Positions 10,025 to 15,378 of a DNA stretch of 64,000 nt are shown here, in pieces. The position numbers and the translations under genes were made by a program. The DNA comes from Klebsormidium nitens. Lineage: Eukaryota > Plantae > Klebsormidiophyceae. The notes under the pieces are model-generated. The model ran no database searches and was not told the origin of the DNA. It worked only from the letters and a program-made list of their open reading frames with translations. How positions within the stretch are numbered: the stretch's first letter is position 1; every line of letters begins with the position of its first letter. The stretch lies in NCBI GenBank assembly GCA_000708835.1, contig DF237342.1, forward strand, positions 1-64,000. Reading direction: 5' to 3'.

Positions 10025-11141
10025 GAAACCTGCGACCGGAGCTCCGACCTAAAAGTAAGAGATCCACATGCAAGACGTCTTCTCAGCAAGCTAAACATTC
10101 CTAAGTTGCTCGCGCGTACTGTGATGAGCGCTCAAGTTCTCAATTTCCCTGTGCGCGCAGGCGTACTACTTTACTACTACTAGGGTTTCTGCCTCTATCA
10201 CGTTTTAGGTAGATTTAGGGTTCAGGGGCAGAAGTTCGCTTTCTGAACAACTAGAGAAGCAGTAAATCTGGTAATGGCCATCGTCAAAAGCCCGTACTCA
10301 GTAATACTGGTCAAACTTCAAATTATTGGGGGTTTGATTTGCTGACGTCAAAATGCGACACCCAGGCCCCAGGGGAACGTTCAAGGCATCCAACGGTCTA
10401 CACACGCTTTTCGGATCTCGTTACGAGATCTGCCCCTGGTGATCATGCACCGTCGATGTTGCGTATCCCGCCTGCCGCGGCAACAGCTGGCAGATCTGAG
10501 AAACGCACCTCGGAGGAAGCCGACAAAAGACGGCGTCATTCACGAATGTGTCGCCATATGCCTGGCCTCACCACCCGGCATGAGCATTCGTTTGAGGTGT
10601 CGAACGCCCAAAGTGCCCAGCGGAGATAACCCGGGTTGAAAGCTGCCGAAGACAGGGCTACCTAATTTCGCCCGGTTACGTTTGACCGGGGGGTTTGACT
10701 TGGGGAGAAGCCTGGAGAGTCGTGACCAGCTGGGTGACCCTGTCCAGACTTCCGTTGACCTGCGCGCAACTTCATATTCAACCTCTTGTCTCTTTCGCAT
10801 GTGCTCTGTGCTCTTTGCTGGGGCCAAGGTGGAGTCCAAGAAGGAAAGCTGTGGGGGGCGCTGGTTGGAGCCCTTGGAAGTTGGAAGAGACGACTCAGGA
10901 GAGGGTGTGTGGGCTGGGAGATCAGGAGAGACCTCGGGATTCGTTCTTGGCCGGAGTTCTCTTGTCGACATCAAATCAAGCTGAGAAGAAGATCAGGGTG
11001 TCCTGCACTTGTGTGGTTTCTGAGCTACTAACACTTCACGCCAGGAGCTCGTCAAGGCCATCTGCAAAACTGGCAAACCACAAGAGAGAAGGGTCGGGGT
11101 CATGGAGTCCTCCGCCTGTGCGGGGGCTCCGCCATCCCAAG

Positions 11142-13981
11142 ATGGACCCCGACCAGCCAAGAACGACGAGGAGCTCGCAGAATGGGGCTCTCAGTCTCGT
11201 GTCAAACATCGAGCAGCAGATGGACTACAGAGAGCTTGCGACGCGGCTAACTGTTAGTGAGAGGAGGAGGGTGCTTGAGGCTGCCGTCAAGCAGCTGTTC
11301 CATCCCAAGATTGAGGAGGACTGTGGTGTTTGCTGCATGGTGTTCTGTGTCCAGTTTGAGGACGGGACGCAGTTGGCAGGATGCTCCAGCAACTACCAGG
11401 AGGAGCTGCAGAAGACCAGAGACGATGTGTCCCGTGTAGCTCAAAAGGAAGGGCAAATGTGAGAATACAGTTGTCTTTCTGTTGATCAGAATGGGCCAGT
11501 CCCCCAATGAGACCGAGGGGCATTTGATCCTTTGACATTACATTCTTGCTTATAGACCATCTCTTATAGTGCAAGTCTATCTCGCACCCTTAATGTATCA
11601 AGAGCAGATTGTTCTGCAAGCAGCAGATTAAGGCTTACGGATGTTGTCATGGCTGACAAACCTTCCCAGTTTGATGTGCTGTGTAAGAGTAGCTGCTTGG
11701 AGAGTCGTGTGTAGATTCAAGAGTCTCGGTCTGTTGCCATCCGCTTGTCTGCGAAGTAAACAGTTGAAATTGCTCAACCTACTATCTTGATGCTTGGCTT
11801 TGCATACATCGTGCTCGTGTCCCTCAGAAAGCTGTTCTTCTGCAAGCGTGCCAGTGCACTCGCAACCATAGGGTTTCTCAAGAATCAGAAGATTCTGAGG
11901 AGCTCATAGGCTCAAGGATTGAAGCCTAGTGGCCTTTCATGTCCTTACTTCAGTGCATGCAAGTCGTTGACTCTGTCACTCCATCTTCAGGTCCATCGAG
12001 ATAACTGATCGGAAGGGGAACCCCAAGCCCTGTGCTGAGCTATTTGGAAGGAGCGATGCCACTGGAAAGAGCAAGAGCAAGTTCCGGGAGCTGCATCCCC
12101 TCGTTGCTCGCTTGATCGCCAAGGTGACCGACGGCAACGTCCCCAGGTCCAAATCAAAGGTGAGGGTTGGTCCATGTTAACTCATTCTCTTCGTCGCCGC
12201 GCGCTTCAGGTGAAGTCTAGTTTGTGAATGGGCTTAATATAGGGATGAGTTTCTAGTCAAAATGCTCCTGGTGGTTTACTAATTAGGTCACGTTGGGACT
12301 GGATTTCTGGTATGCATGCGAGCCTCATTAAGTGTGAAGTTTCGCTGGCCATCCTAACTGTGTCAAGCAATTGTCTGCTGTCTGAAGGAGGAACGTTGCT
12401 CAGATGAGTTGCTGCTAAGGGGGTAGAGACTTGGCTACTTTGGTGTTTGCTTCCATGCTTAGGCTCTGTGCCCTTCAAATGGGTCTCCAAGGGGGCTCCC
12501 CACTGTTCCACTTAAACCAGAGTCTTAGGGTGTGTGCTCAATATAAGCCGTTAATGTCAGAGTGTTGTGTTTGGGGTTACTCCCCGGTATTGGTTTGCTG
12601 TGACCTATGGATCACTTTTGTATAGGTTTTTCCCTCCGAGCAGACAAGGAAGGAGAAACTGTTCTTGAGGTTCTAGCTTCCTCATTGTTCCCCTTTGCAA
12701 AGATTCACGTTGCCTCGGCACTGTTAAACAAAGTCTTGCAAACCTGTTTCCACCTTTTGCCCTCCGCTTAAAACCCCAAAGATTGTCACCCTGCCTTATG
12801 CGCATGCATGCAGATATCTTGTTAACCGCTTGTAAGACATCTCATCTCATTGCAAGCTTTTAGCGACCCTCCTCAGATTGCATCTTGCGTATCTTTCTGC
12901 CTCGCTTTTTCCTAAAAAACCGGCATCACACTCTGTACCTTTTCCTGGGCTTTATTTCATTCCAACCCTCAGTACCTACTTCACAATCAAGTCTTTGAAA
13001 ACCTGGTCTTAACACTTCTGCAAACCCTCTTTGCAGGAGCCTGCTTGGTGGCCCAAGGAGCTCTCTGGCATGTACGCTTGCCGCACCAAGGAGCTCGGCA
13101 TCGACGGCTGCGTCGCCGTTCTCGACAACCTCTTTGCAAAGGTCCGGCACTCGCTCCCCGAGATCCGCGACCTGCGCTCGAGCCTCGACTGCGACTTCCT
13201 CGCCACGCTGACCCCATGCACGCGCGCGACGCTCGAGGCCTACTTTGACTGGCTGGAAGCGGACGCCGAGGAGCCCGCTGTCGTCAACCCTCCCCCAGGA
13301 AACAAGGCCCGCCGGTCCGGGCCAGGGGGGAAGCGCAAGAGGGAGCTGCAGCCCCCTGCGCCGCTCGAGCTGCCCGCCGTGCACCGCGCTTTCCAGCCCG
13401 GGGGGGTTGAGGTTTGCTCTCCGGCTGGGGGGGGACTTCACGCCAGGAAGTTTAGCGAGGGGCTGCCAACAGAGGATGACATGCAGGCGGTGCTCGAGGA
13501 GCTGACAAAGCTTGAGGGGGGCTGCGTGCAGCAGGAGAACCTGCCCCCCGTGCCTGGCGCGTTCGGAAGCACGGGCTCACTGGCCGCGGCCCTCGCACGG
13601 ACAAACTCTTTTCAGCGGGCGGCGATGCTGAGCAGCTTCGGGCGCTCAAACTCATTCACAGCGGCGGCGGCAGCCGCGGCACTGGCCCGCATCGACGCGA
13701 GTATGCCCCTGTCCCCCCTGGGGCAGAACAAGAGCAACGTGATGCCTTTTGAGGGAGACGGCCTTAGCCCCAGCAGCAGTGACGTCACTGCAGCTCTGAG
13801 CGGCGACACCGCGCCAGTGCAGCAGTGGGGGGTGAAGGAGGAGCCGATCGACTTTGCGGGGGGGTGCTTCTGGGCTGGCGACAACCTCATTGCCAGCGGG
13901 GGGTTTGACGGCCAGGACATGAACCAGGTTGAGGCGGCCAAGTACATGGAGGATGGGTGGATGCAGTCTGCCATGGAGTAG
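11142..13981 (+). CDS. Putative DNA-binding protein with NRF1/EWG-, EIN3- and DUF2841-like PxWWP domain and long low-complexity C-terminus
   Basis: Exons 11142-11458, 11991-12159 and 13037-13981 join in frame via GT-AG sites (AT|G, AAG|GAG). Product includes LHPLVARLIAKVTDGNVPRSKSK-EPAWWPKEL and a basic GGKRKR NLS-like motif. The start codon is uncertain. Confidence 0.7.
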
Positions 13982-15378
13982 ACGATGGATGTTCCACGAT
14001 TACAGGAGATGGAGCCATAGATCGGTTTGGGAAGTGTAGGTATTACAAGGCATCTGTTTGTAAGATAGGGATTAGCCACGCTGTTTTGGGAGGAGCCTTG
14101 TCTCGTGAGAAGGATAGGGCCCGCTCGCCCGCTGTTGGTCTTGCTAGTCGGCGACAACTGGGTCCCGAGTAGCAGTACCAACAGGGGTAGGGCCAGATAG
14201 AGACAAAGCAGAAGCTTAGTAGTTACTAGCCATATCAGAACCCTACGTTTTGCACCTTTGCTTTTCACAAATCAAAAAGACTGCCCCTGTTGGATTCGCT
14301 AGTTGTGGACATCTGGGTCCCAAGTAGCGCCTCCAACAGGTGCCTACCATAACAGACGCATAGCCTGCCTAGATTTTGAAGAGGAGCAGACAGTGAGATC
14401 GTTTTGTTATATTGCAAGACTTGTAAATGTAGTGAATAAGAGCACCGTGTTGGCTTCACTAAGGTTGGCAATTGGGTCTTCCATAGTTTAGCCAACATGG
14501 ACTGCTCTTGAAAGGACCAAGTTCCAAATTACAATCCGATTAAAGGAAGGTGTTCCACGTGTGCCGTCCAAGCTGTTCAGCATTTCTTTTTCCAACCAAC
14601 TACCCGTTGTGTGTCCACATTCTTTGACAGAAGGTTTGATATTTTCGACATGATCATTCTGATTGCTGTAACAGGCATCGCAAGGAGGTCAATGTTCCAG
14701 AACAGGCATGAAGCAGCATAAAGAATCAAATTGGATTCTGCATGCAACTGCAGGCCAGACCTCGAGCAACATGATCATGCACGTGTTGGAAGGCGAATAC
14801 ATATTGCCCTGTTTTTCACCGACTGGAGATGAGAGATCAGAGAGGTGCCTTGCGTAGCTGCATATCTGGCCATGCACATGACCTTACAGCATTGAATATA
14901 CGCTCAACTATGGGCTTTAGCTCCATGGCATGCGATTGAGCAGCCATGTGATGCCGAGCTGCAGCATGGACAGGCTGCATGAGACCGTAAGCGCATGCCA
15001 TATTTGCACATCATCATCCATACGCGCTGGAAAGGTATGCCAAAATCGAGCTAAGTTGATTAAATTCTGATGTGTCCGACCATGTCTCGTCGAGGTGAGC
15101 ATGATGGTCTCGAGTCTCAATAATTACGCCGTAGATGACATGTGGCCAATGGCTTCTCCTGAATGATCCAACCCTACTCGCCTTTCAATTCTGCCCCGTT
15201 GCCGTAGTAACTGCAACCTCAGAAGTCTGAGCGGTGTATACTTGGCGCATGGATTTGTAAGCAGACTTTGGCATTGCAATGCTGTAATCTTCAAGAGTAG
15301 TCTCGGCGATGAGCCTTCAAAGCCTTTGAAAAGGAAATGTTCAACACCAACCCCTTTGCAACAGTTGCTCCTTCATTA

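Follow-up and report, generated by a model that had tools for sequence, protein, structure and literature searches.

KFL_003930020, a gene of the streptophyte (charophyte) green alga Klebsormidium nitens, lies at positions 11142 to 13981 of a 64,000-nucleotide (nt) stretch of DNA (positions 1 to 64,000 of the forward strand of contig DF237342.1, here called the window) and is a real, transcribed and selectively constrained three-exon gene. Taken as a whole, its product is best explained as a divergent two-part regulator of the EIN3 type, standing on a separate branch and having the layout and function set out below, a reading that we regard as probable. The two halves of this well-expressed gene, which standard domain searches miss, point separately to EIN3 and NRF1, and its two-part layout appears to resemble that of NRF1. 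Direct support exists for the gene model, for expression, for the purifying selection acting on the gene and for its similarities in fold and profile. An initial annotation, made from the letters of the window, had proposed an EIN3/NRF1-like protein, and this interpretation is supported by hhalign, MAFFT, VIA-align (VIA) and the neighbours found in the ESM Atlas.

Gene structure, expression and selection

The gene is divided as follows:

11142..11458, + strand: exon 1, with the start codon, residues 1-105 and the first two bases of codon 106; translation and joint found in four runs
11459..11990, + strand: intron 1, 532 nt, GT..AG, donor GTGAGA and acceptor CTTCAG
11991..12159, + strand: exon 2, encoding basic linker residues 107-135 (low-confidence in the model) and then the start of the C-terminal half (C-half)
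12160..13036, + strand: intron 2, 877 nt, GT..AG, donor GTGAGG and acceptor TTGCAG
13037..13981, + strand: exon 3, with residues 163-476 and the stop codon

The exons translate into 105, 56 and 314 residues, with an ATG codon split across intron 1, and in an exon-by-exon check the three exons plus the split codon reproduce exactly the 476-residue K. nitens protein GAQ87999.1 of GenBank (KFL_003930020, P0003), filed as "hypothetical protein". The joints 11458>11991 and 12159>13037, both GT..AG, occur in RNA contigs of four public runs from four studies, RNA depth is in the hundreds to thousands over the exons and below 40 over the introns, and a single 1389-nt RNA contig covers all three exons. 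Because contigs of four runs carry the joints, the gene model and both junctions are confirmed and the gene is expressed. These are the two junctions for which RNA evidence had been proposed as a check, and the accompanying claim that the domain is spread over three exons also holds, the borders being canonical and the spliced product being GAQ87999.1. All of the peptides quoted in that annotation were found: RRRVLEAAVKQLF...EDCGVCCMVFCVQ in exon 1, LHPLVARLIAKVTDGNVPRSKSK in exon 2, and EPAWWPKEL and YACRTKELGIDGCVAVLDNLF in exon 3.

Klebsormidium nitens carries a second copy, KFL_001560100 (P0004), on another scaffold (DF237105.1; L123:8001-10952). The duplicated block, window positions 11037-12175 plus 12999-14173, spans ∼3.1 kb at ∼87% nucleotide identity and has different neighbouring genes. 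A 1-nt indel close to the exon 3 end of KFL_001560100 makes its annotated product stop early (…FAGRMLLGW). A gene-sized duplicate without its neighbours, whose other copy has a truncated C-terminus, is what might be expected if the window gene were a decaying duplicate or an open reading frame (ORF) derived from a mobile element and lacking a cellular function. However, the window copy is intact and transcribed at the above depths in several studies. The ratio of nonsynonymous to synonymous substitution rates (dN/dS) between the two K. nitens copies is 0.22, 0.25 and 0.15 for exons 1-3, and therefore the gene is under purifying selection. In Klebsormidium subtile a 468-residue protein from a Trinity transcript (P0001) has the same joins and is 96% identical over exon 3, the tail included, and the Pfam scans revealed no transposon domains. 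An explanation by decay or mobile-element origin is thus exceedingly improbable, and a pseudogene or transposon ORF is rejected in view of an intact, expressed gene under purifying selection. RNA contigs of one run (X9) contain letter variants at 11301-11388, which may derive from KFL_001560100 transcripts.

Outside Klebsormidium, the only relatives come from a few environmental algae. An exhaustive phmmer search of 1.84 billion representatives matched only four clusters: that of the protein itself, a second Klebsormidium paralogue type (P0011, 542 residues) and two ORFs of environmental origin, one (P0009) in a JGI metagenome (L001), the other (P0010) in a Logan assembly (L002). Queried with exon 3, the domain or the family profile, the protein word index likewise yielded nothing beyond Klebsormidium-type proteins and same-family fragments. 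In L001 and L002, whose exons entered the family alignment as separate rows, three exons likewise share the domain, with breaks that match those of the window gene; the exon 2/3 border falls immediately before [E/T]PAWWP, conserving the position of intron 2. The ORFs with intron read-through (P0007, P0009 and P0010) each end immediately before [ET]PAWWP. The positions invariant across the family alignment are P164, A165, W166, P168, Y175, A176, R178, D192, F195 and R199.

Both ends of the transcribed region show further features. RNA contigs cover the stretch from 11000 onward, so the following ORF in the 5' untranslated region is a possible regulatory upstream ORF:

11102..11257, + strand: possible upstream ORF with an upstream ATG, 51 residues, in another frame and overlapping the main start codon at 11142

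At the 3' end, a separate 2131-nt RNA contig (run X7) begins at 14085 and another contig leaves the window sequence after 14114, which suggests a neighbouring or overlapping transcript, or contigs derived from the paralogue, at 14085-14300.

Fold similarity to EIN3 and NRF1 and profile similarity to EIN3

At E<=10, Pfam contains no family matching the exons, the whole protein, its 1-235 part or any relative, and PDB sequence searches with the single sequence and the family profile returned nothing relevant. An AlphaFold2 model was built from an alignment of algal sequences only (A2), with no EIN3 sequences. Its confidence is low (predicted local distance difference test, pLDDT, 46), and its topology is clear: a helix, a hairpin and a long helix over residues 38-103, a disordered linker, and five helices over residues 142-240. 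Foldseek found nothing for it at E<=1e-3, the best local matches being MADS domains on the N-terminal half (N-half). VIA, comparing the model with each of 48,161 PDB representatives, ranked the following chains highest (VIA values in their reported order, then algal and chain residues):

Rank 1: 4zds_B, EIN3 core DNA-binding domain; 6.4, 3.5, 89; 140-241 on 182-301
Rank 2: 8k4l_B, NRF1 (dimerisation domain); 5.2, 3.5, 73; 30-104 on 95-171
Rank 3: 1k6o_B, SRF; 4.8, 4.2, 77; 21-102 on 142-221

Among the 48,161 chains, the top two places thus go to the two families predicted beforehand, EIN3 and NRF1, which match separate halves in the expected order. The ESM Atlas, using its own model of the protein, gives an EIN3 cluster as the nearest by shape (template modelling score 0.49 by query, 161 residues), and its language-model neighbours that carry a family name are PF11001 (0.86, 180 of 256 features shared) and PF10491, Nrf1 (0.80). 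All of these matches lie below the 0.9 line and are therefore leads only; a query with the paralogue P0011 gave nothing useful.

To assemble an EIN3 comparison set, JGI metagenome contigs were scanned with a degenerate pattern for the EIN3 motif KCLQDKMTA. The scan recovered 120 plant EIN3/EIL loci (L003-L122), three of which were verified as PF04873 at 387-441 bits, and 19 representatives below 85% identity formed the EIN3 alignment. In hhalign, the 15-row algal family aligned with these 19 sequences over 199 colinear columns (score 27.9, P 0.0034, probability 9%), pairing the hairpin CCMVFCVQFEDGTQLAGCSSNY with its EIN3 segment, LHPLVARLIAKV with LGSLLSALMQHC, PAWWP with PPWWP, and VAVLDNLFAKV...IRDLR with EIN3 VGVLTGVIKHM...IRNRV. 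The reversed template scored 21.4, column shuffles scored 14.4 +/- 2.5 (0 of 150 reaching the real score) and shuffles of ten-column blocks 16.9 +/- 2.8, with one of 150 reaching it. Taken alone, the N-half aligned with the EIN3 helix and hairpin columns (P 3.4e-4, probability 38%; none of 70 shuffles reached the real score) and the C-half with the EIN3 core domain (P 0.003; two of 70 shuffles reached it). MAFFT alone yields the same colinear alignment, with 16-20% identity to EIN3. Together, these comparisons offer weak but consistent evidence for remote homology to EIN3.

A joint AlphaFold2 model, from an alignment (A3) of the algal family with the 19 EIN3 rows, reaches a pLDDT of 62.7 overall and 67-91 over residues 140-245. 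VIA gave for it:

4zds_B, EIN3 core; 10.6, 2.4, 101 of 129; 136-241 on 182-301
8k4l_B, NRF1 dimer; 5.9, 11.3, 135; 37-237 on 102-282
8k3d_A, NRF1 DNA-binding domain; 5.6, 3.2, 70; 136-238 on 201-283
1k6o_B, SRF; 5.1, 2.8, 73; 27-102 on 146-221

Since EIN3 rows went into the alignment, the EIN3 value of this model is not independent; no alignment contained an NRF1 sequence, so the NRF1 matches owe nothing to the modelling input. A Foldseek search of 350,542 chains with the joint model placed 8k4l_A, 4zds_B, 4zds_A and 8k4l_B at the top (E only 0.2), and an Atlas shape search placed an EIN3 cluster first and MADS second. In the PDB sequence searches EIN3 came up only with the joint profile, which contains the EIN3 rows, and the NRF1 chains came up with none.

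Could the likeness be a matter of chance? The protein might be a lineage-specific orphan that happens to combine a PxWWP motif with a common arrangement of helices. This is very unlikely given that EIN3 and NRF1 were named in advance and then took the first two VIA ranks, that hhalign is colinear over both halves and scores above shuffles, and that the ESMFold shape search, language-model features, AlphaFold with VIA, AlphaFold with Foldseek, and MAFFT all agree. We hold homology of the fold to be highly likely. The opposite possibility, that the gene is orthologous to canonical EIN3/EIL and serves ethylene signalling in Klebsormidium, draws on EIN3 being the best structural and profile match. 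The hidden Markov model (HMM) PF04873 fails on the algal protein, however, compared with 387-441 bits for true EIN3, identity is only 16-20%, the gene has three exons compared with the single ORF of plant EIN3, and separate EIN3/EIL proteins have been reported in K. nitens (PMC9136324). Canonical orthology is extremely improbable on these grounds, and it is rejected for the HMM failure, the three exons and the separate proteins; the initial annotation, too, had held that this is not a canonical EIN3.

Several observations weigh against placing the protein with EIN3 and NRF1 as a DNA-binding regulator. At E<=10, PF04873 (gathering score 27 bits) matches neither the exons nor P0003, P0001, P0004, P0009-P0011 or fragments, and the algal family has no match to PF10491 (Nrf1_DNA-bind) or to PF11001 (gathering score 31.3 bits) either. 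In the MAFFT alignment the algal protein has no counterpart to the second WW of EIN3 or to its basic YKKPHDLKK stretch. The N-half (net charge -3) and the whole C-half (-2) are also less basic than in EIN3, which counts against DNA binding.

Protein layout and proposed function

The protein contains the following parts:

11247..11456, + strand: N-half module, residues 36-105; helix, beta-hairpin, helix; MADS-like and like the NRF1 dimerisation domain
12079..13273, + strand: C-half helical domain, residues 136-241, interrupted by intron 2; EIN3-core-like DNA-binding fold
12091..12126, + strand: candidate recognition helix, residues 140-151 (LHPLVARLIAKV); predicted helix that aligns with EIN3 LGSLLSALMQHC
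13040..13054, + strand: PAWWP motif, residues 164-168; P164, A165, W166 and P168 invariant in the family, aligning with EIN3 PPWWP
13304..13345, + strand: basic stretch resembling a nuclear localisation signal (NLS), residues 252-265 (KARRSGPGGKRKRE), read from the sequence; putative role in nuclear localisation
13451..13978, + strand: acidic C-terminal region, residues 301-476; net charge -15, isoelectric point (pI) 4.05; two RxNSF motifs; candidate activation or regulatory region
13823..13960, + strand: C-terminal segment, about residues 425-470 (VQQWGVKEEPIDFAGGCFWAGDNL...MNQVEAAKYM); weak alignment to the N-half module (alignment A4)

The linker has a pLDDT below 50 for residues 104-136 and a net charge of +2. 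The ELHP[IL]VA motif of the candidate recognition helix is kept in relatives, and residues 136-200, comprising this helix, PAWWP and the next helix, carry a net charge of +5 (pI 9.6). Residues 244-300, which include the NLS-like KARRSGPGGKRKRE, carry +7 (pI 11.4), and the acidic C-terminal region is kept between Klebsormidium species.

We predict that residues 1-245 make up an EIN3-type module of two parts. The N-half (∼36-105), similar both to NRF1's MADS-like dimerisation domain and to the N-terminal portion of the EIN3 domain, would pair two chains into a homodimer, and a disordered basic linker would join it to the C-half (∼136-241), with an EIN3 core fold and the invariant PAWWP loop. Helix 140-151 and the PAWWP loop would touch the DNA groove, as in NRF1 and EIN3. 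The basic NLS-like stretch is followed by the long, acidic, conserved tail, which may bring in partners. Overall, the protein would most likely be a regulator that sits in the nucleus, forms homodimers and binds specific DNA sequences. Dimer formation, DNA binding, import into and location in the nucleus, and activation are all properties that we infer, and DNA binding in particular seems moderately likely.

The protein may instead have an EIN3/NRF1-type fold in which DNA binding was lost or never present, and may bind protein partners, for example titrating family members via the dimerisation module. Consistent with this, the domain is near neutral overall and has neither YKKPHDLKK nor a basic helix before the hairpin, the several paralogues and tandem units could heterodimerise, and the fungal relatives in PF11001 are without known function. 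However, the predicted recognition helix and WWP segment are still basic (+5, pI 9.6), an NLS-like stretch followed by an acidic tail is the usual layout of an activator, and the invariant PAWWP, YA.R and F..VR fall in the part matching the DNA-binding cores of EIN3 and NRF1. We judge a protein-binding role of this kind unlikely and favour the DNA-binding regulator.

The acidic tail and the relatives show some further features. At 13600-13670 ARTNSFQ and GRSNSFT (R-x-N-S-F) flank a short segment before an alanine run; both motifs are conserved in other Klebsormidium species (P0002, P0005 and P0007) and may resemble basophilic-kinase sites. The C-terminal segment at 13823-13960, judging by its alignment, may be a degenerate second module of the dimerisation type. 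In the relatives, a second clear helix-and-hairpin module (ALRQLAEADNAKGCMWTLVGG...SSPNL...) ends the exon-3 ORFs P0009 and P0010 (L001:6001-7332; L002:3560-4822), a further C-half (LLNVLDVVFLKVRGEFFHIRELK...) lies 3 kb downstream in L001 (10482-10757), and in P0012 one ORF runs from a C-half directly into the start of a P0011-like unit. Tandem units of this kind suggest proteins with two or more repeated two-part units.

Comparison with EIN3, NRF1, PF11001 and MADS-box proteins

The MADS-like character of the NRF1 dimerisation domain was reported in the NRF1 paper, and the MADS likeness of the algal protein, spanning only ∼60-75 residues, is the same one. At the level of sequence the N-half has no Pfam match to PF00319 (SRF-TF); the likeness is confined to the fold, and a MADS-box protein is ruled out on both counts. 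For NRF1/EWG/P3A2, the animal reference (PF10491; structures 8K4L and 8K3D), the comparison with the algal family is structural or indirect only, as it is for PF11001. A conserved WWP segment in the DNA-binding linker of NRF1, as supposed in the initial annotation, was looked for in the text of the NRF1 paper, which does not contain the string 'WWP'.

The fungal reference is the YDR124W / AFUB_079030-like helical bundle domain (PF11001, formerly DUF2841), the nearest named cluster to the algal protein by language-model features. All 19 EIN3 sequences give a weak PF11001 match in their core DNA-binding region (best E 4.1e-5, under the gathering score), and none of the 19 matches PF10491. Because all 19 match, PF11001 belongs to the same wider group as EIN3 and the link is visible by ordinary HMMs; it is probably already known to curators. 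The algal family is farther from PF11001 than EIN3 is. The earlier suggestion of a divergent member linking EIN3, NRF1 and DUF2841 is supported by likeness in fold, profile or features; by HMM, the protein belongs to none of the three families.

The Klebsormidium family could be a surviving intermediate, with EIN3/EIL, NRF1/EWG and the YDR124W-like proteins (PF11001) all descending from one ancient eukaryotic two-part factor, in which a WWP-bearing helical DNA-binding domain would have come after a MADS-like dimerisation module. We put this forward tentatively and consider it rather doubtful; if true, plants would not have invented EIN3, nor would NRF1 stand alone as a fold. Plant-TFClass lists EIL as a class not present in mammals, and our literature searches found no paper tying EIN3 to nuclear respiratory factor 1 or EWG and, by gene identifier, none mentioning KFL_003930020.

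The closest comparison is with EIN3/EIL itself (PF04873 EIN3_DNA-bd and PF27048 EIN3_N; structures 4ZDS and 1WIJ). In the hhalign and MAFFT alignments, the algal protein has, like EIN3, in its N-terminal part a helix and a beta-hairpin ending in G-x-S, followed by a linker, in the same order, and the dimerisation of EIN3 also requires its N-terminal part (PMC4564277). In the C-terminal part the order shared in these alignments is a helix (LHPLVA compared with LGSLLS), P-x-WWP, a helix, an I-R-x-L helix and a final C...T-A...L-x-x-E-E helix. Unlike EIN3, the algal family has no insertion after WWP, where EIN3 carries its second WW and the basic YKKPHDLKK, and no basic region ahead of the first helix; its gene has three exons whereas plant EIN3 is an intronless single ORF, its C-terminal tail is unrelated, and its relatives have tandem repeated units. 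The "plant-only" EIN3 fold would therefore have a hidden algal branch, adding to the regulators of an important streptophyte model alga and making the deep origin of the fold testable, and KFL_003930020, KFL_001560100 and their relatives are candidates for transcription-factor catalogues.
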